DNA of 64,000 nucleotides from Paragordius varius (taxonomy: Eukaryota; Animalia; Nematomorpha), in contig OZ176052.1 in assembly GCA_964247055.1 (NCBI GenBank), positions 7,502,001 through 7,566,000 of the forward strand, written 5' to 3'. The notes beneath the pieces are model-generated. The model ran no database searches and was not told the DNA's origin. It saw only the letters and a list, made by a program, of their open reading frames with translations. The position numbers and the translations under genes were made by a program. How positions within the stretch are numbered: position 1 is the stretch's first letter; each line of letters opens with the position of its first letter. Shown here one piece after another: positions 31,388-54,083 of the stretch.

Positions 31388-34300
31388 CACCATAAATTCA
31401 ACAATTTGCGCATGTTTCGTGATACAGAAAACTCTAGTTATAAATTTTACTAACAATTGTATGGTCTTTACTATTTATAAAAACAGGCGATTGTCCCCGG
31501 CCTTGCGGAATATCTTTGGTAAGGCCGTTAGCTCCTTGTGGCAAAGTTTCTCAATACATAATAAATGGTAACGTTTCTCGAAAAGGGGCCTGGCCATGGC
31601 TGGTTTATATATTATTTTCTTTTTTGGAAAAGAATTAAATATATATATGTTTTATTGGATTTATTTTGCAAATAAAGTTCAAATTAAATAAAGAAAGGTA
31701 AATACCAATTTATTCTTTGTTAATTACCAAAAATTCAAAATATAGACTTTAATGAAAACATTTACCTAATTCATGTAAATGATTTTTATATAAAGAGTTT
31801 GCTAATTTTTTATTTATATGGATTTTCTTATATACTTTTTAGGTCAAAATTGAAGTTATTTGGTATGACGATAATTACCGCTATAAGAAACAGTGTGGGG
31901 GAGCTATTATATCCGATAATTATATTCTTACCGCTGGTCATTGCCTTTATCAAAAGTAGTATTTAATATTAATTATATTCTACACCCCTGTCATAATGAA
32001 CCAATTATGGAAAATACCAGGTGTTTTATAAGTTATTATTGGTTAAACTAAGTAAAGCAGACAGCGAATAGTAAGACGATTAATTTGATACAGATCTCAT
32101 TTTGTTCAGCCATCAAATTACAAACACGCATAGCTTGAGTTGACCGAAAACTAGTGTTTGTTTTAATCAATCAGTAATCATGTCTTGTGCCTGAAAAGAA
32201 CATTTGCGCATTGCCATCAAAAGATAAGGGCTGTTCAAAGTTATCGTTTATTAGTAGAAACATATGGTTAACATACCTTATTGAACCCATGTAAAACATG
32301 GTTTCGAATATTAAAAGTTTTGATTTTATGTGAAAGAATGTAGGCCCTCTGGTAAACAACAATATAAAAACGATTAAACCCAACAAAACTCAACGGCAAT
32401 TCAACGGCAATTGACAGAAACATTATATTTATTACAAAAAATCATCAATAGATGTTCAGACTAATGGGAGATACCAATCGGATGGGTTCCACACAATTTT
32501 ATGAACGTCAAATCGCAAAGTAACTGGTAATATACTACTTTAACCTCATGAAAAGATATCTTTTGCATCGAATTGGAACGAGTGATGAGAAATGGGTTTA
32601 TTTTGTGGGTCGGTTGAATAAAAAATAAGTATAACACATTTCTTGTTTTTCAACTAAAAAAATTAGTCCCTGTCTGTTTAGATGGTTTCTTTGGAATCAC
32701 CAAAGGATATTTCTCTTTTGAAAAACGAATGATATTTACAATTTTTTTCATTGTCTTATCTATCAGAACTTAGTTTGGCGCTTAAAAGATGAGCAACTTG
32801 ATATAGTAATTAAAAGGGCTGCCGGTATACTTAATCAGATCAGTGTAGATTCAATCTTCTGAATTTTAACACAGTAGGTTTAAAAAACTTATACTGCAGT
32901 AAGATGGAAGGTCTGAGTAGAGTTTTATATAGAATATTTGTTTTAAAACATGAAATATTATTTATGAAAAAACCGAAGTTGGACAAAGACATCTACAATG
33001 AAAAATGTGAGTTACAATGGCTTATCTTTGCGACATTCAAAATATTTAGTGAATTTTCAAATCAAATATCTTATTTTAAGAAAAAGTAAATATACAGATT
33101 TTATTTATATTGTTTCTATATTTTACAACATGGGAATTCTAATAAACTCTTCGATTCAATGGTATATCTAAATACCCTAGACTAAATTTAAATTAAATTT
33201 TCTAAAAAACTACTGAAGAAAACAGTCCCAATTTAAATTTATGCTTCCATCCTAATAAAAATTATTTAAAAGTCCAAAATATCTAAAAAAAATTTCGTTT
33301 TGAAAAAAAAGTTCCAACTACTTGGACGCCATTTATCTGCAAAAATTTTGCAAAATACCGGGTTTATTTAATTCTAACGTTAAAATTAAAGCTAATTATT
33401 TATTCAAATTACATCTAACATTGAAAAAAAATAGAAAAAGTGGTTAATTTTTTTATTATTTTTCAATTTAGCCAATGCACATATGTTGCGTTAACTTAAT
33501 TTTTACCTTTGGGTTTTACATTAAAAAAAGAAATATCTAGTATTTTTGAATTAATTTTTTTATATATTTCGGTTTATTGATGTTATATGAGTGCAAATTT
33601 TGCAATGGTTTCGATTCCTTCCATACTTTTAAAGTATTTAATCTTAAACAGGCCTGGGGTATCCAACCCCAATTTAAATCGAAGGACTGAAATGTATGTG
33701 TTGTATCCAAGTGTTAACTGAACTCAAATTAAGGTTACCATTTACATTTTTATCTAATGAGAATAAAATGGAAATAATTTGAAGATATTAAAAATTGCTT
33801 TCTTAAAACTCGTCGAAAATCCATGGTGTATATGTACCAAATATTAAGTACCTTGCGGAATTCGGTTTTGATCAGGCGCTTTGAAATATGTCTTAATTCG
33901 AAAATGGTTCCAATTTGATATGCCAAATATACTAAAATTAATAGAAGTTTACATTAATTTAAGTTTTATTACATATATTTTAATCTATCACGTGATAAGC
34001 CTAGTTCCAATTTATAACCATTAATTTTAGTTATTTGATCTCTATCCTAATAGTTGAACCCCATTTCCACATTGTATCGGTTATCATACAACCGATTTGG
34101 TTTTTTAAAGAAGCAATTATCTTAAATATTTTTGAACCATAAACATATATATTATTTTACTAATTTTTTGTAAATACTTCAGTATAAATAACTCGGTTAT
34201 GATGGATATATCGACTAATAATAACAGATATTAATTATTTATATCCATTTTATATAATCGAGAAATTAAGGGGACTCGAAGAATGTACTCGCTATTCTGC

Positions 34301-35038
34301 TTGTAAAATTCATATAAAATTTATCCTAGCATAATTATATTAATATTTTATAGCAATGTCAGTTTAGCGATGCGGAAAACAATAAAGATTTCAACAGAAA
34401 TCTCTTCAAAACCAATCAGAGTTAAATCCTATGTCCTTCATCCAAAACATCTTTTTTTAAAGCCAAAACATGATTTAGCTTTGATTCATGTTAAAGATGC
34501 ATTTAATATAAGCAAATCAAAATTTAATAAAGCTTGCCTCCCGAATGATTTTATGATAGGTCAACCAACAAATGAATGTTACATAGCTGGATATGGCCAT
34601 TTTAATCGTAATTCCCAAATATTATATCAAATAATAAAAAATACCATTTTTTAACAAATTTAAAGCTTTCAATTATCCACATTATGTTTAGGGACGGTTC
34701 CAGTCATGTCAGAACGAATCCGCGAAACTTGCATGAAATTCCAACATTATGAAGAATGCTCAACCCATAAATCCCTAACTGTCCCATTAAAAAATGCCAT
34801 TTACAACCGTCAATTGGGCTGTGGTTTACCCATGTCTTATGGACATACAGATAAGATGACTTACTGCGCAAAAGGGGATTCGGGAACTCCGATTGTATGT
34901 AAAGTTGGAAGCCAAATGCAAATACTGGGTGTTATGGCCAAAGGAGCTGTCAGAGAAATTTGTACTTTCGTTAACATTACTATGGTTGAAAATAATAGAT
35001 GGATCCATGAAACCTTGACTCATAACATTTTATCGTAA
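31388..35038 (+). CDS. S1 (trypsin/chymotrypsin-fold) serine protease; start codon not located
   Basis: Exons 31388-31458, 31487-31602, 31843-31955, 34354-34607 and 34692-35038 join in phase. Motifs: pro-peptide CG, activation site Y|IINGN, GAWPWL, CGGAIISDNYILTAGHC (His), HDLALI (Asp) and GDSGTP (Ser). Confidence 0.9.
32400..32800 (+). mobile_element. Decayed mariner transposase relic in a protease intron
   Basis: Broken frames retain GWVPHN (mariner WVPHEL motif, about 32480) and LHRIGTSDEKWVYF (mariner first catalytic Asp region, from 32563). The element boundaries are not defined. Confidence 0.7.
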
Positions 35039-35279
35039 CGGCAAATTAAGGAGTGCAATTCGATTATTTTGAGAATAAATAATTTACATTTTCTGACCAA
35101 TTGCCTATAACGGGTTAAAACGAATTAACAGCAAGCATAATTGGTCTTTTTGATTAAAAAACAGAATTTATTCTATTGCAATTGTTTTATCACATTTACG
35201 GAAGTAATATTGGTGGTAAGTTTTGAGTTGTTGTACAAAAATATAAAACTTTATGGACATATATGATTTCCAAAAACTA

Positions 35280-38200
35280 CTAATTACATTTCAATTGATC
35301 ACTAATATTGCTTAAGATATCATCGAAACAATTATTTGTCGTAGACGATTCGAACTCTGAGAAAAGATCATTAACTGAAAAATCATTATAGGCACCATTA
35401 TCTTGATCGTTGACATCATTTTCGTTTTCGAAAAACCAGTCCTTATTGTTATCCATCATAGCTTTGGCGGTAACAGCTCGGTTTTCTGTTTCAGAATCTA
35501 AAACAAAATTTGATAAAGAAATTCAAAACTCAAAAATCTGATTTCGCATTAATAGGTAAATTTTATAATAGTTAAGATATAATTTGATTTTTTCAATAAG
35601 CGCCTTACTCATAATGGGCTTGTGTATAATAATAAGTAGCGCTTTTATATGAATTAACTCATGCTTATTAGTTATTATAATGTATTGAAATGAAACAGTT
35701 AAAAGTATCGTCTAACTTCCCATTTACTAGTGAAATTTAAATATCTATATTTTAAGCCAAAAACATTTTAACTTTTTTCAAACTTCTGTACAATAATATA
35801 AAATACCACATAAAATTAAAAAAATAATTATTTTAATACTATTCCATTCGTGCATAAAGGACACAATTGGGGAGATTATGAAGCGCATCTACTCAATTGC
35901 ACAACGAATTCGAAAATTTATTACAATAATTTAATAATGGCAAAACATAAGAGTAAAAGACTAATATTTGTTATAAAGAAAACCATATTGATTATTGTAA
36001 TTTGAATATAAATTGGATCATAAGATATAATATTGAGTATTTTCATTGCTATTCTCTATTTCGCAACTCAATACAATAGTTTATACCAGGGGTGGCCCGC
36101 AAAAAATTTGAAAATCCATAAATTATAAATATAGGCTTAAAAATCTTGATAAAATTTATATTATTTACATAATAAATTTTTGTTAATAAATCTAACCAAG
36201 CGACAAGAACAAGAATTCGCTATATTGTGTTTGTGTTTTCCATTTTATGTTATTTAATAAATTCCTAATTACAGTATGCATTTTAATGTATGTTAAGTAA
36301 TTTTATTGCCTGCCAAAAAACATAAATGGTTTATCAAATGCGTAAAATACTGACCCACAAAATTATTTCGCAGTACACCTATGAAAGAGGATTGACGTGA
36401 GAATTAACATAGCTTTTGATTTGATGGATATTTTGTAATGTTAAATTTTGAGAATATTATAGGAATTTATGTTAACATTTGAAATATTGTTGATACGCAT
36501 TTAGATGAGGAATTTTGTGGGATTTTATCTTTGATAAATTAATAAATAGTAAAATACGTATTTTAAGATTTTTTATGTTTCCTAAATTTAATATTTTATA
36601 TTTTTCAACATGCTAAATACCTGTATTAATTAATATTGGTATTATAATTTTATTTAGTTGTTGTTATTAATTAAAAAAACACAGGTAAATACATATTTGT
36701 GAAAAATTAAATGGTATTTAGATATTTTTGTCTTTTATGTTTTGCATTGTTAATTATTGATAATTTTTAAGCATTTCAGACATTTTAATAAGGTAAAAAT
36801 TCCAGTTTTTAAATTTAGTCAAATTTATTTATTTTTTGTTTTTTTATTTAATATTACTATTTGTAATTAACTACTACATATTTTGGACATTTTAATAATT
36901 ACAGGTAAAAATTGCGGTTTTTAACAAATTTAGTAAAAATTTAGTTTTTTTTTGTTTTTTTAGGTTTTTCATTTTTAATTGTAATTAATTACTACATATT
37001 TTGGACATTTTAATAAATACAGGTAAAAATTGTGGTTTTTAACAAATTTAGTAAAATTTTAGTTTTTTTTGTTTTTTTAGGTTTTTCATTGTTAATTGTA
37101 ATTAATTACTATATATTTTGGACATTATGATAAATACAGATAAAAATTGCGGTTTTTAACAAATATAGTAAAAATTTAATTTTTTTTGTTTTTTAAGTTT
37201 TGCATTGTTAATTGTAATTAACTACTACATATTTTGGACATTTTAATAAATACAAGTAAAAATTGTGGTTTTCAACAAATTTAGTAAAAATTTAGTTTTT
37301 TTTTGTTTTTTTAGGTTTTTCATTGTTAATTGTAATTAATTACTATATATTTTGGACGTTATGATAGATACAGGTAAAAATTGCGGTTTTTAACAAATAT
37401 AGTAAAAATTTAGTTTTTTTTGTTTTTTAGGTTTTGCATTGTTAATTGTATTAACTACTACATATTTTGGACATTTTAATAAATACAAGTAAAAATAGTG
37501 GTTTTTAACAAATTTAATAAAAATTTAGTTTTTTTAGGTTTTTCATTGTTAATTGTAATTAATTACTATATATTTTGGACATTATGATAAATACAGGTAA
37601 TAATTGCGGTTTTTAACAAATATAGTAAAAACTTAGTTATTTTTGTTTTTTAGGTTTTGCATTGTTAATTGTAATTAACTACTGCATATTTTGGACATTT
37701 TAATAAATGCAAGTAAAAATAGTGGTTTTTAACAAATTTAGTAAAAATTTAGTTTTTTTTGTTTTTTTAGGTTTTTCATTGTTAATTGTAATTAATTACT
37801 ACATATTTTGGACATTATGATAAATACAGATAAAAATTGCGGTTTTTAACAAATAAATGTAACATTTTTTGTATTTTGTATCATTGTTATTTAATTAATT
37901 ACTAAATATTTTGGACATTTAAAAAACTGGTGTAAATTGCGGTTTTTAATAAATTAGTAAAATTTTAAATTTTTTGTTCAACCTTGCTAATTTATTTTGT
38001 CACTATATATTTGTGATACATTGATATATACAGGTAAAAATTACTATGATTTGCGGTTTTTTAAATTTTTTAAAATATTAGTTATTGTTTTACCATAACT
38101 AATATATTAAATATTAACATATCTGAGCAGGTAAAAATGCATGTTACGGTTTTATGTTTGACATTTTATTCCAAATCAACTATTTATATTTTAATAAACA

Positions 38201-41200
38201 CCTTATGTCATTAAAGATTGAAAATAAGATCAAAATATATAAAACATCTTTTAAAATATCTGAATATCGCCAAATATAAATAAATTTATTTAAATTATAA
38301 ATGTATAATTATACAAAATATTCATAATATTTGTTTGAAATTAATATTCTTCTTATTGATATTAATACAGGTAATTTATTTATATAATGATCTACGATGC
38401 GGTGTGCGTTCATGATGATCATATAGATTGAATAATAGTCTGATATGCAATAATTAAATGCAGATAATCCTGAAAATTTACCATAATTTTCTAGGTGGAT
38501 TCTATCAACTAAAATATAAGATAATTAATATATTAGAAAATTGATACCTGGATTCTAGAAGTATTTTCAACATAATTTTAAATATTGGGAGCTAAAACAT
38601 TCAAAGTTTGAAAGGAAACTCAATAAGCTTGACTTGGCTTTTTAACAACTAAATTTGCAAAAAAATATTTTCTTCATGATAAAAAATTCAAAAATGATAC
38701 TTTATGTTTTTTTCGTTCTACCATCCTAAACTATAAATATAAAAAACTATATGTTAGTGTTGCCTTGCTTAGTTTTTGGAGTGCTGTTGCATTCAAAGCT
38801 TTTAAAAATAAATATTTGTTTCTATTTTCTATTTGACGTCATTGGTATGGTGAAATCGTATAAGCCTTTTCATATTTATAGTTTAGGATAATAAAAAAAA
38901 ATAAAGTATCATTTTTGAATTTTTTATCATGAAGAAAATATTTTTTGTTCCCTTTTCAAACTTTGAATGTTTACCCAAAATTTAAAATTATGTTGAAAAT
39001 ACTTCTAGAATCCAGGTATCAATTTTCTAATATATTAATTATATTATATTTTAGTTGATAGAATCCACCTAGAAAATGATGGTAAATTTTCAGGATTATC
39101 TGCATTTATTATTGCATCTCAGACTATTATTCAATCTATATGATCATCATGAAAGCACACCGCATCGTAGATCAATTATATAAATAAATTACCTGTATTA
39201 ATATCAATAAGAAGAATGTTAATTTCAAACATAATATTATGAATATTTTGTATAATTATACATTTATAATTTAAATAAATTTATTTATATTTGGCGATAT
39301 TCAGATATTTTAAAAGATGTTTTATATATTTTGATCTTATTTTCAATCTTTAATGACATAAGGTGTTTATTAAAATATAAATAGTTGATTTGGAATAAAA
39401 TGTCAAACATAAAACCGTAACATGCATTTTTACCTGCTCAGATATGTTAACTATATTTAATATATTAGTTATGGTAAAACAATAACTAATATTTTAAAAA
39501 ATTTAAAAAACCGCAAATCATAGTAATTTTTACCTGTATATATCAATGTATCACAAATATATAGTGACAAAATAAATTAGCAAGGTTGAACAAAAAATTT
39601 AAAATTTTACTAATTTATTAAAAACCGCAATTTACACCAGTTTTTAAAATGTCCAAAATATTTAGTAATTAATTAAATAACAATGATACAAAATACAAAA
39701 AATGTTACATTTGAAATTTGTTAAAAACCACAATTTTTACCTGTATTTATCATAATGTCGAAAATATGTAGTAATTAATTACAATTAACAATGAAAAACC
39801 TAAAAAAACAAAAAAAAACTAAATTTTTACTAAATTTGTTAAAAACCACAATTTTTACTTGTATTTATTAAAATGTCCAAAATATGTAGTAGTTAATTAC
39901 AATTAACAATGCAAAACCTAAAAAACAAAAAAAAACTAAATTTTTACTAAATTTGTTAAAAACCGCAATTTTTACCTGTATTTATCATAATGTCCAAAAT
40001 ATATAGTAATTAATTACAATTAACAATGAAAAACCTAAAAAAACAAAAAAAAACTAAAATTTTACAATATTTGTTAAAAACCGCAATTTATACCTGTATT
40101 TATCATAATGTCCAAAATTATAGTATTTAATTACAATTAACAATGAAAAACCTAAAAAAACAAAAAAAACTAAATTTTTACTAAATTTGTTAAAAACCAC
40201 AATTTTTACCTGTATTTATTAAAATGTCCAAAATATGTAGTAATTAATTACAATTAACAATGAAAAACCTAAAAAAACAAAAAAAACTAAATTTTTACTA
40301 AATTTGTTAAAAACCGCAATTTTTACCTGTAATTATTAAAATGTCCAAAATATGTAGTAGTTAATTACAAATAGTAATATTAAATAAAAAAACAAAAAAT
40401 AAATAAATTTGACTAAATTTAAAAACTGGAATTTTTACCTTATTAAAATGTCTGAAATGCTTAAAAATTATCAATAATTAACAATGCAAAACATAAAAGA
40501 CAAAAATATCTAAATACTATTTAATTTTTCACAAATATGTATTTACCTGTGTTTTTTTAATTAATAACAACAACTAAATAAAATTATAATACCAATATTA
40601 ATTAATACAGGTATTTAGCATGTTGAAAAATATAAAATATTAAATTTAGGAAACATAAAAAATCTTAAAATACGTATTTTACTATTTATTAATTTATCAA
40701 AGATAAAATCCCACAAAATTCCTCATCTAAATGCGTATCAACAATATTTCAAATGTTAACATAAATTCCTATAATATTCTCAAAATTTAACATTACAAAA
40801 TATCCATCAAATCAAAAGCTATGTTAATTCTCACGTCAATCCTCTTTCATATGTGTACTGCGAAATAATTTTGTGGGTCAGTATTTTACGCATTTGATAA
40901 ACCATTTATGTTTTTTGGCAGGCAATAAAATTACTTAACATACATTAAAATGCATACTGTAATGCCCCTATGTATATATTTGAATGCGGCCCACGAAATC
41001 ATTTGTGTTGGGCACCCCTGGTTTATAGAATAAACACCTTCTCGCATGATGTTTTCGATAAATACCATTTAAAAAGGGTCATTATGTGTAAAAAAACAAG
41101 TCTTTTACTTTTTATATGTTTTGCTCCTATATTTCTAATTTTCTATAGCAATAAATTGTGGACTAAAATTAAAACCAAAATATTATTATTATATTACTCA

Positions 41201-44200
41201 CCAATATCTTGAAGGATATTTTCAAGGGCCACCTCGTATATTACGGGGTGACACCAAGCTTTAGACAAAATACTGGCATCAAGACTATCGCTTGTTTCAT
41301 TCATAATGATTTGAGACGCCATCGTTTTATCTGGCATAACAGGTAGGGAGAGGTCATCATCTTTGTCAAATTTATCGGAACTCAAAAATTCAAATTTGGA
41401 ATCTAATAAACAACATTGTTAACATATATACCTTAGCTTGATATTTTAATTGGAATTGAAAAAAAACTAAGTATATTAACGAAAGGGAAAGATTGTACAT
41501 AAAATTAATAAAAAATATTAGAGCTATAATTGTGGCTTAAAAAACAATGTATTAATTACATTGTAAATGTTTTCATAATATTTAGTATATTAAATGAATT
41601 AAAATCTATTTTAATGTTATCCCTTGTGATTTAGATGTGATATAATATATAAGGCTAAATTTATACCATTTGTCCCAGTGTTTACAGATTGGTTGGGTGA
41701 AACATTATCCGAAATATCAAGGATATTAAGGACATTATTATAAATCTGGTTCCAGGATTCTTCTGCCAACAAAGTTTGCTTGATTTGCAAAACTGTATCG
41801 AGAACACACTTTTTATAACATTCCTCCCTATTTCTCCCAATAGCCAAATTACAGATAGCAGGTGTAGTTTTCAATTCGTAGTACATTTTAAATGGAACTA
41901 TATCATACATGAATAGGAAAGTAAAATCAAAATATCTTATAATCCGTTAAATAAAACAAATTAGTGAGGGGTTTAAATTTTCACTAAAAATACTATACCA
42001 ATCATATGCATGGTTTTTAACGAGTGTTATTATGCATACTTTTAAAATTTTAAAATATTGTGTATAACACATAATTAGCGGGATATAACTCAAAAATATA
42101 AAATTGGAGCAAAAACAAGAAATTACGAAAATAAAAATAATTCAATATGATTTATATATAATACAATTCAAATCGGCTCCATTGACATGGTAATGTTTGG
42201 TTATTTTGATGTGTTGTTCTTCAGCAATGTTATTCATAATTTCCTCATACATTGTGATGTCAAGTTTATCAAAATCATTACTATCCATCCTTTCGTACCT
42301 TACAATGTCAAGAGTTTTTAAGCGTGTCAAAGTTGGTCCCAAATTCACAAATTCAAGGTACATCTATTTATTTGGGCGTCGCATATATTTAGCCAATCCG
42401 TTGGAAAAAAAGCGAAAAATAGGGAAATTTTAATATAAAAGAGTTATTTACAAATAATAAACCATTTATTATATTCAGAATTTAATGTCTGGCAAATGTG
42501 CAATACGCAAAAAGCTATTCAATAAAAACGATTGCGGATTTTTTCTCTCAAAAATCGATAATGATTAGCAATTGAAAGTTCATTTAAAAAATTTAATTGA
42601 TATATTTTGAAAGACAGATTGGAACTGCAATTATTAAAATAACATTTTAACCTAAGCAATAGAATACGATGAAAAGGAAAGTTCTAATATAAAAACATTT
42701 TTTTAGATTTTAGTAGTAAAATTACGCATATCCTTGAAAATCTTTTGATATTTTTATGCGTACTTGAATTTTATTATGTATGTATTATGATGACATATTT
42801 TTTATATTTTTAAATTCAAATAAATCACAATTTTTACATTCAAATTTAAAATTTAATACCGTTATATATATAGTAATAATTAATATATCTATTTAATGAT
42901 ATATTACATAATCTTTAGTATCGCTCGGGAACAATTTACTCGGAGATAATCCACGTTTTTTAGTCGTTTTTTGAACATTCTCCTATTCATAAAAATATTC
43001 AAGTTAGTGAATCAAATAAAAAAGGGATAATTAAAATTACATAATATAACCAAAAAAAACAAGCAAATTAAAAAAATACCTTTATCAATTCGTTTATAGG
43101 CATGACATTACAAGGGATAATATCAGTAATGGGCTTTTTCATCTATGATGATAGGAAATAATTATATGAAAACCAATTGTGACAGCACAAAAAACTATAT
43201 AAATAAAACTTTTTAATTCTTAATCTTAAACAAAAATTTTACCCATAATTTAATTAAAAGTTAATAAAAACTTACTTTTTCATCCTTAATTTCATTGGTG
43301 CCGGCAGTGGATTTATTGTTGGGTTTCTCATCCATATTTTCCCCCATAGATACGTCAACATTGCCTGCCAAAATGTGCAAATTTTCTTTCACGATTTTAA
43401 GCAAAGCGATTGCCGCTAACCTTTTAGCCGATTTCTTTGATTTGGCTTCCCCTGAAAAACAAAAAAAAATATTTTATTATTTAACAATGTTTTTGTTTGT
43501 TTTATAAACAAATGCCATAACATTGTTTGTTTTTAGCTTATTAGGGTTTCTAAGCCAAAAATAATAAAATTATATAACTAGCAAAATAAATTTTTGTATA
43601 AAATCAAATGGTTTTAATAAATTGCTAACATTGTGGTGCTAGTTTGAATAGCAAATCCAAAAAAGGGCAATAAAACGATAAATAGCCAACACAGTAAAAA
43701 ATGATATTAAGCTTAAATATTCGGATACACAAATAATTGATGATTAAACAAGTATTATACGATATTATTTGGGTGAATGAGAAATATATACATAATTATT
43801 AAATTACTATTGATATTTGTTTAATAAATGTTTTATTTTGCAGATTTAAAGGTTGGGTAAAAAGAGCAAAACTTTTGAAATGGTACGATATAAATATATT
43901 CTGCTAATCCAGATATATATTAAACATATAAGTATTTTATGATAAAACCAAATTTTACTGTGTAAGTAAAAACAACATGTTATTATTAATATATTATCCT
44001 ACCTTTTGTCGTAAACTCATTTATTTTGGCTTGAATGGTAAAGGTGCGTTCATGAGCCATTCCAAAAGCATCTATAAGCTCGTACTCTGGCGGTGTTATT
44101 TTGTTATTCAAGCAAATGTCCAGGAGTTCTCCGATAGGGTTATCTCTAAGGTGGGGTGGTTTGGATTCATCCTGCGCATATAATATAAAAACTCATTAAA

Positions 44201-45075
44201 TTTGTTGAATATACCTATATGTTTTCAACTACATTTTATTTTTAATTATCAATAATTTATTTGGCCATATAATTTATTTATAAAGACGGAAACGTAAATA
44301 CCCATAAATAAAAGCTATAAATATGCTATCAAGTGTTAATAAGAACAAAACAAGGGGTAGACTATCCTTGGAAAAATAATTTAAATATTTTAAATGGCCA
44401 AAAATATATCAAAATATATGTAAATTATTTGTATATTTTAATACTTGTATATAATTAAAATCAATGCAAATATTTTAAATTTTTTAAGTTATCAATCCAA
44501 TCATCTTGAAAAAGGTATTGATATAATTTATTATTTAAAAAAAGGTGTTTACTTCATATTCCATTTATTGTAAATTTTTTAAGGGCCATTAATAAGATAC
44601 CTTCGCAGCAAATTACATTTAAATTATAGAATGTTCGTTTAAACAAAATTTTATAGCACTTTATTTTTATATCGAAATAGTATAAAAATACTTAATTACA
44701 ATCAACTTTGTGTTTGTATAAAAAAGAATTAGATAAAACAAAATATATCCATCGAACGTATGCTAAAATGAATTCTTTTTAATTTTTTGATAAAAAATAT
44801 GTACCATTATCATAAAAAACAGTATAAATATGAGTTTAAAAAACAAATGATTTATAAAATTGAGTAGGCATTAATATGAATCTTTAAACGTGCCATTGCG
44901 GTGACAATATTTTAAACATAATTTAGGTTTTATATTGGTACAAAATAATTTATTTTACTTATTTACATAAAAAGACTTATATTATTTTTTATTTAGTATA
45001 CTACCATGTATCGAAAATTTTGGATATAGTTTATTTAGTAAATTTTACGAGAGTTTAAATTATTATTTTAACTAA

Positions 45076-45108
<33 letters not shown>

Positions 45109-47150
45109 TATAGGTTCGTTTTCCGTTATAGTGACATCTTCACCGAGTTTTGTAAATATTAGTTTATCACATTGTTCAGCGCTAGAAAATATAGACAAAA
45201 TTTATGAATAAAATCGAAATATTTTATCTGAATAAATCAGAAATCTAAAATCAACCAATTTTTTTGTTTACAAACATTCAAACGTAAACATTTGTATGCT
45301 ACCATAATTATAAACCCTTTAATTCAATATTATTTTTTAACACTTAAATACAACATATTCATTTGGGAACCCTAAGCCTGTTAAAAATCAAATATTTCCA
45401 AAAATATGGAACAAATTGTTCTTTGCAAAATTTTAAACTTATGGAACACTGATGCACCGAAATATAAAAAAAATTTATAACTTAATATTACTTAATTTAT
45501 AAATAAATACGATGATAAAAATTTAGCCAACATGACACATGCATAGGCTTAATATAAAAATAATGCAAATCCAACTTATTTCTGTTTATAATAATAATAG
45601 ATAAAACCTTTAATTTTAGCTTTAAAATTAAAATACGATATTTTGCAAAAATGTTGCAAAATAAATATGGCGTCGAAGCAGTTTGATATGGAGATTGTTT
45701 TCAAAACTTAATTTTATTTAAAAATTTTAGCTTTTTTTATAATTTCTATTATAATAAAATCAAAAATTAAAATTGAAACCGTCTTCCTTAGTAGTTTTTC
45801 AACTGTATTAATTTATGAAGTCTTTACGTACCCCAATTTGAATCGAAGTGTTAAAATAAAATAACTGTATCGAATTCGAAAAATTGCATTTATATATCAT
45901 TGATGTACCACAATAAAAAAAGAATTTATCATAAGCTTTGCCGCAATATCATATTAACTTCACTATGCTGACGACACTATACTGCTGTCTTTAGTGGAAA
46001 ACTAAAAAAACTCTTAGGTCTAACGATCAACTACAAAAAAACTAAAATTATGAATATAAACGCTCAGAATTATTACAACAATTTATCCTTAGCCAACCAA
46101 AAATCAAAGTAGTCTCCCAATACACTTATTTAGGCAGTCTTATTAATACTAAAAACAGCACCCCCGACATCAGAAGAAGAATAGGAATCGCTAAATCAAA
46201 AATGATAAATTATATAAACTATGGTCGTCACACGACATCAAACTCAAAACGAAAATCCGATTAGTTAAATCCCTAATATTTCCTAGCATGCTATACGCGT
46301 TAGAAAGTTGGACAATAAAAAAGGATGAAGAAAGCATTAACGCCTTCGAAATGTGGTGCTGGCGGAAGATACTACAAATCACCTGGAAAGACAAAATAAA
46401 GAACACAGTAATCCTTGACAAAATCAATCCCAAGATACACCTGATCGGCATGTGCCTTAAAATGTGTCATACTTTGGTCACATTACCAGAGCTAATGAAT
46501 TGGAATTCCAACTAATGACAGGCAAGGGGGTCGAAGGATCCAGGAAACGTGGACGCTGCAAGATGCGCTGGATTAAAAATAAGCAAAGAAACCAATCTTT
46601 CTTTACAACAGCTAACAGCACTCGCTTACAATCGAATAAACTGGACAAAATATACCTTCGAAAAAACAATAAATGGACAACGATCTTTGCTATATAATTA
46701 ACTTTAAGAGCTAAATTTAAAAAATGCGAATTCAGATATGATTAAAAATTTGCAATGTATTAAAGAATTAAAAATGCATTTTTATCGTATTAAAGCCGTA
46801 ACAAATAATAAAAGTTTGGTAGGGAATGGAATTAAATTATAAAGGTAAAATTAAAAATTACAGTTCAATAATTTTCGCCTTTAGATCAAACAATGGATGC
46901 TCAGACTCCGTCAATTCTGATATTTTAACTAACATATTCTGCGCCGCATTGTGACGAGCCAATTTTTTACTGGATCCATGGCCGATTGTAGATAAATTAG
47001 AAACTGAACAATCAAATATAAAATTATAATTTAATCGTTTGTCCTGAGACACCAAATTGTATTGGGGTGTATATCCTACAATAAAATTTTGAAATAACCT
47101 TTTTTTAAACAAAGTTCATGCAGAACACTTAAAGGAGTTTTGCTGCTCAT
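35280..47150 (-). CDS. TRBP/PACT/Loquacious-like dsRNA-binding protein with three dsRBDs and an acidic C-terminal extension
   Basis: Exon 1 is MSSKTPLSVLHELCLKK, followed by a 23-nt intron. dsRBD1: GYTPQYNLVSQ...FIFDCSVSNLSTIGHGSSKKLARHNAAQNML. dsRBD2: NPIGELLDICLNNKITPPEYELIDAFGMAHERTFTIQAKINEFTTKG|EAKSKKSAKRLAAIALL (exons at about 44180-43990 and 43462-43275). Type-B third domain: MNNIAEEQH...ELKTTPAICNLAIGRNREECYKKCVLDTVLQIK. The last exons, 41402-41202 and 35497-35280, join in phase; stop at 35280. Confidence 0.85.
36871..37920 (+). repeat. Tandem array of about 115-120-bp units in the left foldback arm (about 10 unit starts)
   Basis: Recurrent TACTA(C/T)ATATTTTGGACATT...GGTAAAAATTG(C/T)GGTTTTTAACAAAT at about 36871, 36989, 37108, 37223, 37340, 37455, 37563, 37678, 37797 and 37899. 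Confidence 0.9.
39640..40360 (-). repeat. Mirror-image tandem array in the right foldback arm (about 7 unit starts)
   Basis: AATGTC(C/G)AAAAT recurs at about 39648, 39753, 39872, 39989, 40107, 40222 and 40339. Confidence 0.9.
45940..46620 (+). pseudogene. Decayed RTE-clade LINE, RT and C-terminal fragment, inside an intron of the dsRBD gene
   Basis: TATGCTGACGAC (YADD) at about 45964, followed by frameshifted RTE motifs: LYALESWTIKK, INAFEMWCWRKILQITWKDK, YFGHITR, GSRKRGRCKMRW. Confidence 0.85.
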
Positions 47151-47176
47151 TTTTTGAGAAAATGCGTTCTTAACAG

Positions 47177-47922
47177 ATGTCTCAATGTATTGAATGCGGT
47201 GCGCAAAATTTTGAACCAATTTTCGTAGAGTTTTCTCCCGGGATAATAAAACTAAATAAATGTGTATTAATATATTTTTTATTTAGTATAAATGTCAGAA
47301 TTTTATTGATAAATATGTAGAATATGACAATACCCTCATATTGTTGGATTTACTACTTTTTAAAATCTCAGCATTTAGGCATCTTTTGTGGAATTTGTCT
47401 ATTAAAGTACATTATAATTAATTCATAGAATAATTGGAAATTTTTTATTATTTTATGCGTATTAGAAGCATTTGGAAATTTCATTAATGATTTTACAGCC
47501 ATAAATTTTGATGAAAAATTTTATTTATATCTTATAATTCATTTTATAAGTATATTTCTTTATAAATAACAGATAACATATTTTTAATAACCATCATATA
47601 CGGTCTCTTATTTTTACATAATAAGCCTATATCATTTGGCGATATATTTATGATATACACTCTTACAAGCTATGGAAAAATTATACCCTTCTTATTAGTT
47701 CCCTGGAATTATGCCCAAACAGAACTTCATTTCTTACTAATATATATTTTTATTCTTTTGTCAAACACAATAGGATTTTCTGGTATAATTTACAATTTTA
47801 TATTAACAGTTAAAATACATTTGGCAATATGGAAATCGGCACTTATTGTTGGAACTTCTTATTTAGTTGTTTATTTAACAAACAAAAAATTATTTGAAAT
47901 ATTAAATAGTTTTTATTATTAA
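47177..47922 (+). CDS. ARV1: ARV1 homolog (ER sterol/GPI homeostasis protein), 5 exons
   Basis: Spliced product: MSQCIECGAQNFEPIFVEFSPGIIKLNKC|YKCQNFIDKYVEYDNTLILLDLLLFKISAFRHLLWN (Arv1 homology domain, zinc-binding CxxC...CxxC and DKYxEYD), then TM segments including LTSYGKIIPFLLVPW. Introns are 47264-47286, 47407-47428, 47550-47572 and 47783-47809. Confidence 0.92.
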
Positions 47923-47962
47923 ATTCCTCCATATATATGCTGTATAAATTTTATTTTTAAAA

Positions 47963-48284
47963 CTATTTTTCCTTTGATTTAGCGGTCAAAACCTCTATCA
48001 AATTGGAACAATTCGTTAATATTAATGTGACGACCTTTTTATCCCAATACGCATTAATCCCTTTGAGAGTCATTGCGTTAAACATAACGATATTTTTGAT
48101 AAATATTTGGTTCATAATTTTTAACTGTAAATTTGGATAAATGTTGCAACACGTAAAATTTAAAATCGAGATTAATTAGTATAAAAAAAATACATAGATT
48201 GGAAAACCAATTTTTAGATATCAGTTGTTTAAAAGCGAGTAATTTTCTGACTCTTTGAAGTGATTTGGCCTTATAGTTCACCAT
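47963..48284 (-). CDS. Possible small two-exon gene (97 aa), convergent on ARV1
   Basis: The ORF from 48284, spliced over a putative 28-nt intron (48125-48152), continues in frame for 53 aa (LKIMNQIFIK...AKSKEK*). The donor is weak and I recognise no homology. Confidence 0.3.
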
Positions 48285-53529: not shown

Positions 53530-54083
53530 CCAATTTACTAAATTTGTTAAAAACCGCAATTTTTACCTGATTAAAATGTCTGAAATACTTAAAAATTATT
53601 AATAATTAACAATGCAAAACATAAAAGACAAAAATCTAAAATCTACTTAAATTTTCACAAATATATATTTACCTGTGTTTTTTTGATTAGTAATAACAAC
53701 TATATAAAATTATAATACCAATATTAATTAATACAGGTATTTAGCATGTTGAAAAATATTTATTATTTAGGAATAATTAACATAAAAAATCTTAAAATAC
53801 GTATTTTACTATTTATTAATTTATCAAAGATAAAAACCCACAAAACGCATCTAAATACGTAACAACAATATTACAAATGTTAACATAAATTGCTATGATA
53901 TTCCCAAAATTTTACATTACAAAATATCCATCAAAATAAAGCCTATGTTAATTCTCACGTCAATCCTCTTTCATATGTGTACTACGAAATAATTTCGTGG
54001 GTCAGTATTTTACGCAGTGGATAAACCATATATGTTTTTTGACTGGCAATAAAATTACTGAACATGCATTAAAATGCATACTG
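53530..54083. mobile_element. Solo, truncated terminus of the foldback family
   Basis: Diverged copy of the right-arm end (about 40290-40959), ending ATGCATACTG|TA at 54083. One repeat-bounded segment is deleted. It abuts the Helitron 5' end at 53520. Confidence 0.85.

Follow-up and report, generated by a model that had tools for sequence, protein, structure and literature searches.

The foldback elements FB and Galileo of Drosophila duplicate 9 bp and 7 bp of their targets respectively and belong to other superfamilies than the Tc1/mariner/pogo group, whose signature is a TA target-site duplication together with a CAGT terminus, the latter typical of Tc1 and pogo. Hairpins that serve regulation have precedents in the hairpin RNA (hpRNA) loci of Drosophila and in the self-regulation of DGCR8 and ADAR2, where Microprocessor cleaves hairpins in the DGCR8 mRNA and ADAR2 edits its own pre-mRNA. 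Foldback-shaped, non-autonomous derivatives of Tc1/mariner with long terminal inverted repeats are known from Caenorhabditis elegans, as the Tc7/CeleTc1, Tc6 and PALTA families, and from elsewhere (PMC3814204). Here we describe a 4688-bp foldback element in a 64,000-nt stretch of the genome of the nematomorph Paragordius varius (assembly GCA_964247055.1, contig OZ176052.1, positions 7,502,001 to 7,566,000; this whole stretch is the window, and positions below are counted within it), where the element adjoins, and likely interrupts the last intron of, a gene for a double-stranded RNA-binding protein of the TRBP/PACT/Loqs type. The original prediction for this DNA, made from its letters alone, saw in the hairpin a possible source of endogenous small interfering RNAs (siRNAs) or one half of a feedback loop with its host gene, and named a neutral recent insertion as the fallback. 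Our analysis favours the last of these: the element is probably an ordinary copy of a non-coding foldback DNA transposon family of about 100 members, inserted by chance and neutral in effect.

Inverted arms were found between 36268 and 40963 by a repeat search and by BLAST of the sequence against its own reverse strand, and the exact ends of the element were set by comparing its termini with those of twelve other genomic copies. The element opens at 36272 with CAGTATGCATTTTAATG and closes at 40959 with the reverse complement of CAGTATGCATTTTAATG, which gives exactly the 4688 bp that had been claimed; the near-identical arms proposed at about 2.5 and 2.1 kb measure 2474 and 2093 nt, and the loop put at about 120 nt is one of 121 nt in the predicted fold. 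When the two halves are aligned with gaps, the arms are 98.4% identical over 2094 aligned columns, rising to 99.7% over their outer 673 nt. Between them there are 33 substitutions and a difference of three subrepeats, the left arm being longer by 116 and 222 nt, or roughly three copies of a tandem subrepeat of 117 bp. When the whole proposed intron of 5704 nt is folded with ViennaRNA on the transcribed strand, the predicted structure (-3115 kcal/mol) contains 2068 arm-to-arm pairs in a stem running from 40959:36272 inward to 38867:38745, with bulges of 117, 225 and 40 nt and a longest perfect helix of 333 bp, while the central 761 nt alone reach a fold z-score of -48 against shuffled sequences. 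An Rfam scan of positions 34000-48000 found no known RNA family over the gene or the element. False inverted duplications can arise in long-read assemblers, and a palindrome of this kind might in principle have been made by chimeric reads, but the chance of such an artefact is negligible here: the element begins and ends precisely at the family termini, between duplicated TA dinucleotides, it is internal to a contig of 14.4 Mb, its arms carry the differences just listed, and the same architecture recurs in about 100 other copies.

These other copies were found in the assembly, which comprises 110.6 Mb in 44 contigs. The terminal 33-mer, TA included, occurs 106 times in forward and 105 times in reverse orientation (211 occurrences genome-wide at up to three mismatches, against none for a reversed control pattern), which corresponds to about 105 elements, and both the terminal 533 nt and the centre of the element match at least 40 other genomic places at 85-98% identity. 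The family was sampled through 16 full copies of 2.0-6.7 kb, namely the 4688-bp element and fifteen others fetched from the assembly. All 16 have TA on both sides and contain the 117-bp subrepeats, and CAGTATGCATTTTAATG directly follows the TA at the terminus in every foldback copy. The fifteen further copies have about 20-24% GC and an arm identity of 91-99%, and in 14 of them the longest open frame spans 44-117 codons, the exception (L014) being a copy with a nested foreign insertion that is considered below. With long inverted arms around a short centre, arm subrepeats of varying number and a dispersed, TA-flanked, non-coding family, the element thus has the structure of a foldback transposon. 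Its arm identity is not exceptional within the family, being matched by three copies (L013, L017 and L021) whose arms are at least 98.3% identical, and in the comparison of the 16 full copies no feature distinguishes it from its relatives, roughly 105 in number. In the other copies, variants specific to one copy are present in both of its arms alike. A further terminus had been proposed at 53530-54083; it is real, and at 53532-54083 on the minus strand constitutes a solo truncated end, for which no inverted partner was found.

A TA duplication and a CAGT-type terminus, the marks of a non-autonomous element of the Tc1/mariner (IS630-Tc1-mariner) superfamily, are both present, and together they suggest that a transposase of Tc1/mariner type mobilised the element in trans. 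Two observations weigh against the account of a simple recent insertion. The closest other copy among the matches listed is only 96% identical in the terminus, where the two arms of the element agree at 99.7%, so that the age of the insertion is not separable from arm-to-arm conversion; and a search for an autonomous partner with the same termini, which was not exhaustive, found none. The one candidate that arose was a 204-codon frame in L014 with a weak match to HTH_Tnp_IS630 (E = 0.0011) and the motif SPQLNPIENF. It was rejected as the partner, as it interrupts the foldback sequence at position 92/93 and its close relatives (L029-L031) have no foldback termini, and by its sequence it is best described as a nested foreign Tc1-like insertion. 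The Tc1/IS630-like transposase remnant occupies positions 785-1635 of L014 (G000:C8:1402484-1403334), and about 100 transposase fragments related to it are scattered through the genome, some of which keep an intact frame of about 340 codons.

The host gene lies on the minus strand and was modelled by direct reading of splice sites and phases. The resulting nine-exon model, in which all introns are GT-AG and all phases are consistent, has 1533 nt corresponding to 510 codons and a stop. Intron 1 measures just 23 nt and is taken as real because the orthologue reads LCLKKGYTPQYNL across that position; the same gene also holds introns of 0.2-5.7 kb. Exon by exon, the Pfam dsrm family detects the first double-stranded RNA-binding domain (dsRBD1) in E2 (E = 2.3e-7) and the second in E4 and E5 (5.8e-5 and 0.011), so that two canonical N-terminal dsRBDs are present, and the best relative of dsRBD1 among solved structures is TARBP2 (5e-11). 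An exhaustive protein search with E7 returned a single true orthologue, P0003, a protein of 541 residues from Gordionus sp. (Nematomorpha) annotated as "RISC-loading complex subunit tarbp2-like" and the only orthologue detectable; two other matches to E7 were rejected as spurious, both being repeat proteins. E2 and E4-E7 are collinear with P0003 at shuffle z-scores of 9-32, and a word search with P0003 brought up only P0003 itself, the canonical Loqs/TRBP-like P0004 and the R2D2-like P0005, the last two without a tail of the kind described below. P0003 carries two dsrm stretches (7.8e-24), and its third region matches Staufen_C with E = 4.8e-4, below the curated cut-off; exon E7 of the window by itself gave no match in the PDB. 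Since P0003 is nearest to Loquacious (3e-22) and TARBP2 (about 1e-20) in the PDB, ahead of Staufen (1e-12) and R2D2 (1.6e-8), the TRBP/PACT/Loqs-like label given to the host gene appears a fair one, and its dsRBDs and its best structural matches agree with what had been claimed. A retroelement fragment of reverse-transcriptase type (46194-46700, plus strand; frames MLYALESWTIKKDEE..., recognised by eye) lies in intron 2.

Table 1. Positions of the foldback element, its parts, the solo terminus and the exons of the dsRBD gene within the window.
Feature	Position	Strand	Remarks
Foldback element, non-autonomous non-coding DNA transposon	36272-40959		4688 bp, 20% GC, longest open reading frame at most 71 codons
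TA target-site duplication, left	36270-36271		TA flanks both ends in 16/16 full family copies
TA target-site duplication, right	40960-40961		TA flanks both ends in 16/16 full family copies
Left arm	36272-38745		2474 nt; unpaired bulges 37174-37290, 37497-37721, 38620-38659
117-bp tandem subrepeat array, left arm	36787-37978		about 9-10 copies
Terminal loop of hairpin	38746-38866		121 nt; centre common to at least 40 other copies, 85-98% identity
Right arm	38867-40959		2093 nt
117-bp tandem subrepeat array, right arm	39592-40440		about 7 copies
Solo truncated foldback terminus	53532-54083	-	89.6% identical; ends ...CATACTG/TA
Exon E1, start codon	47099-47150	-	tblastn match to orthologue
Intron 1, GT-AG	47076-47098	-	23 nt; removal restores LCLKKGYTPQYNL, exactly as in Gordionus orthologue
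Exon E2, dsRBD1	46862-47075	-	Pfam dsrm 2.3e-7; orthologue match
Exon E3, linker	45109-45181	-	73 nt; phase-2 acceptor and phase-0 donor fit E2/E4; by eye like orthologue linker
Exon E4, dsRBD2 first half	44003-44171	-	Pfam dsrm; orthologue match
Exon E5, dsRBD2 second half and linker	43276-43451	-	Pfam dsrm; orthologue match
Exon E6, first half of third domain	42165-42363	-	orthologue match
Exon E7, second half of third, non-canonical dsRBD-like domain	41667-41897	-	orthologue match
Exon E8, first part of tail	41202-41402	-	donor G/GTGAGT; unspliced reading stops two codons on
Intron 8, proposed last intron	35498-41201	-	5704 nt, GT-AG, phase 1; about 1014 nt without element
Exon E9, proposed last exon	35280-35497	-	72 codons of acidic Asn-rich tail and stop; AATAAA about 110 nt downstream

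Whether the element is intronic depends on exon E9, which we consider likely to belong to the host gene. The borders claimed for the intron agree with ours, with a donor G/GTGAGT at 41202/41201 and an acceptor ttttgttttag/ at 35498/35497. This acceptor follows a T-rich tract, has the phase that E8 demands (phase 1) and starts an open frame of 72 codons, and it ranks best of the 264 AG sites within 8.2 kb downstream; one other frame is equally long and runs antisense to a coding exon of a trypsin-like gene. A tail is to be expected because P0003 continues for about 119 residues beyond its third domain. The tail of the window gene, split between 41202-41402 and 35280-35497, is acidic and has in common with residues 423-541 of P0003 an N-x-D-W-F-F motif, which appears as NKDWFFE in E9 and as NQDWFFQ in P0003 (BLASTP E = 0.025 against the whole protein); the tail matches no Pfam family. 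E9 is single-copy in the genome, and the best tblastn match of the P0003 tail in the entire window falls at 35540-35304, although with E = 2.8.

An alternative that we regard as unlikely is that the gene terminates with the stop codon at 41196-41194 (...QDIGE*), that the frame at 35497-35280 is separate and that the foldback lies in 3' flanking DNA. The similarity of the tail to that of the orthologue is indeed insignificant on its own (shuffle z of 1.0 for E9 and 0.3 for E8, beside the tblastn value just given), and E9 has no Pfam match. A word search with E9 by itself also came back empty, which carries no weight because the length filter of that search leaves full-length proteins aside. Nevertheless a consensus donor stands exactly at the end of the E8 frame, the acceptor combines its T-rich tract, phase and open frame with a near-best rank among the AG sites, the P0003 tail contains the best local matches of E8 and E9 in the expected order (438-449 and 464-515), the N-x-D-W-F-F motif recurs in an orthologue that itself continues past its third domain, and E9 is acidic and Ser/Asn-rich where the surrounding chance frames are Ile/Lys/Phe-rich. 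Placement in the last intron, as originally proposed, is therefore likely rather than proven, resting on splice sites, phase and a weak collinear homology. If E9 is real, the geometry of the locus dictates that both arms are contained in every pre-mRNA that reaches the last exon.

The reading of a neutral chance insertion, which we prefer, would run as follows. A foldback transposon that targets TA and is mobilised in trans by a transposase of the Tc1/mariner type would have landed in a last intron of about 1 kb. Transcription as far as the last exon would copy both arms, and the intron would snap into a 2-kb AU-rich hairpin whose stem starts at the termini of the element and joins intron flanks of 242 nt and 774 nt, leaving the spliceosome to see an intron of about 1 kb. 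Splicing would then proceed much as before and the hairpin would be discarded with the lariat; we infer that this transcription, folding in vivo and harmless splicing do take place. A likely reason why such insertions are tolerated is that a self-pairing insert leaves the effective distance between the splice sites unchanged. The arms would stay similar through the youth of the insertion, through homogenisation against each other, or through both, and any processing by Dicer would be a by-product common to every transcribed copy rather than a circuit tied to this host gene.

That the host is a gene for a presumed Dicer cofactor calls for no special explanation. On a rough estimate, about 105 copies and a pre-insertion gene of 7.2 kb in 110.6 Mb give a chance of about 0.7% for this gene, and for any one of a handful of small-RNA genes it would be several percent, which is unremarkable among the many observations made on one genome. 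Of the interpretation put forward in the original prediction, the anatomy of the element, the identity of the host and the likely placement in the last intron have stood, while no specific link between hairpin and gene was found; its fallback of a neutral recent insertion has become the best-supported reading, this being one of some 105 copies built to nearly the same plan.

It is by comparison improbable that the locus is a functional hairpin, in which Dicer and this very cofactor make siRNAs against the foldback family, or in which the protein binds its own pre-mRNA and thereby tunes inclusion of the last exon. Both arms fall within one transcription unit if E9 is real, and the long duplex that they would form is almost perfect, its helices reaching 333 bp, but these properties belong to one copy among about 105, from which no feature distinguishes it. 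The genome does encode RNase III and Argonaute/Piwi genes; the family, however, is non-coding and the search for an autonomous partner, which was not exhaustive, found none that shares its sequence, so that silencing would have no obvious beneficiary. If intron 8 were retained, the frame would close two codons past the donor and a truncated isoform might result, yet in DNA of 27% GC chance alone is expected to place a stop this close behind a donor. According to a published survey, nematomorphs have no RNA-dependent RNA polymerase (PMC13650160), which would make hairpins and convergent transcripts natural sources of double-stranded RNA. Production of siRNAs by dicing of the nascent or the excised hairpin is accordingly plausible by analogy with the Drosophila hpRNA loci, but it would be generic to every transcribed copy, and the only complementary sequences found as targets in trans are other non-coding copies of the foldback family.

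For the autoregulatory loop the prior is low, attractive as the analogy to the self-regulation of DGCR8 and ADAR2 may be, and we hold it to be highly improbable. The same low estimate applies to a more specific form of the idea, in which the hairpin in the last intron would make the full-length, tail-bearing isoform sensitive to the capacity of the cell for handling double-stranded RNA: the protein's own complex would bind or dice the nascent duplex, leading to read-through of intron 8 or premature termination, and the product ending two codons after exon 8 would close a negative feedback.

Six-frame Pfam scans of the genome, whose sensitivity is limited by their proceeding exon by exon, placed two Piwi-domain loci at C2:3.353-3.356 Mb and C1:12.319-12.328 Mb and two RNase III loci at C4:9.147-9.149 Mb and C4:7.780-7.782 Mb, which suggests a small RNA-silencing gene set. 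The scans returned no match for an ADAR-type deaminase, a negative that carries no weight as the control also matched nowhere.

The surroundings of the element bear the traces of other repeats. An older repeat, about 180 nt long and dispersed through the genome in at least 40 copies that are 70-77% identical, lies at 36092-36266 and stops within a few bases of the left insertion point, with no continuation on the other side. The left flank of the element is unique in the genome except for its last 175 nt, which are part of this repeat. Comparison of the flanks within the assembly recovered no empty site, no second haplotype copy being present there. About 20 kb past the end of the window stands an unrelated palindrome (G000:C3:7586217-7594269; L032 and L033) with arms of 3.9 kb that are 99.8% identical, a spacer of about 257 nt and fragments of a Tc1-like transposase in inverted orientation. 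It was rejected as a member of the foldback family, with which it has no sequence in common; kilobase palindromes are thus a local commonplace that extends to other DNA nearby. On the far side of the host gene's end, the final exons of a gene for a trypsin-like serine protease (34370-35038, plus strand; GDSGTP motif, recognised by eye) converge on the dsRBD gene, the two stops being about 240 nt apart. The GC content of the window is about 27%, and the DNA of Gordionus has been reported to have 26.9% GC and to be rich in DNA transposons (10.1101/2023.06.26.546503).

With its sharp limits, the element cleanly exemplifies a very large family of TA-flanked foldback transposons in an AT-rich animal genome that has been little studied, and it indicates that introns can tolerate hairpins of kilobase size. 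For a lineage that is reported to be without an RNA-dependent RNA polymerase, transposon hairpins of this kind may be the main endogenous source of double-stranded RNA. This particular copy would gain greater importance only if it were shown to feed siRNAs or to modulate the C-terminal isoform of a Dicer cofactor.

Set against the known systems, the host protein resembles TRBP, PACT and Loquacious in its two canonical N-terminal dsRBDs and a putative, divergent third domain, with Loqs-PD/PB and TARBP2 as the best structures, but whereas TRBP, PACT and Loqs-PB end right after the third domain, the window gene and P0003 carry an extra tail of about 120-140 residues. With the self-regulation of DGCR8 and ADAR2 the locus shares the proposed logic of a protein that meets a duplex in its own transcript; those structures, however, are short, conserved and experimentally shown, in contrast to the 4.7-kb insertion of a repeat family seen here. 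With the Drosophila hpRNA loci that yield endogenous siRNAs through Dcr-2 and Loqs-PD it has in common a long inverted repeat within one molecule, which could be copied into a single RNA and diced (PMC3890300, PMC10317233, PMC10292708), the single transcription unit in our case depending on the likely exon 9. What defines the hpRNA loci, however, is their small RNAs and their gene targets, whereas the present hairpin is a generic transposon copy for which the only complementary targets found are other non-coding copies. The closest likenesses are with transposons. Like FB and Galileo of Drosophila, the element has kilobase arms with tandem subrepeats, a small centre, arm lengths that vary between copies and between arms, and homogenisation, but its target duplication is TA in all 16 copies. 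Like Tc7/CeleTc1, Tc6 and PALTA of C. elegans, it has a TA duplication and a CAGT terminus, is non-coding, consists essentially of one long inverted repeat and exists in many copies, although its arms measure 2-2.5 kb as against a few hundred bases and contain 117-bp subrepeats. On the best reading, the element thus belongs with the foldback-shaped non-autonomous transposons that resemble Tc1/mariner.

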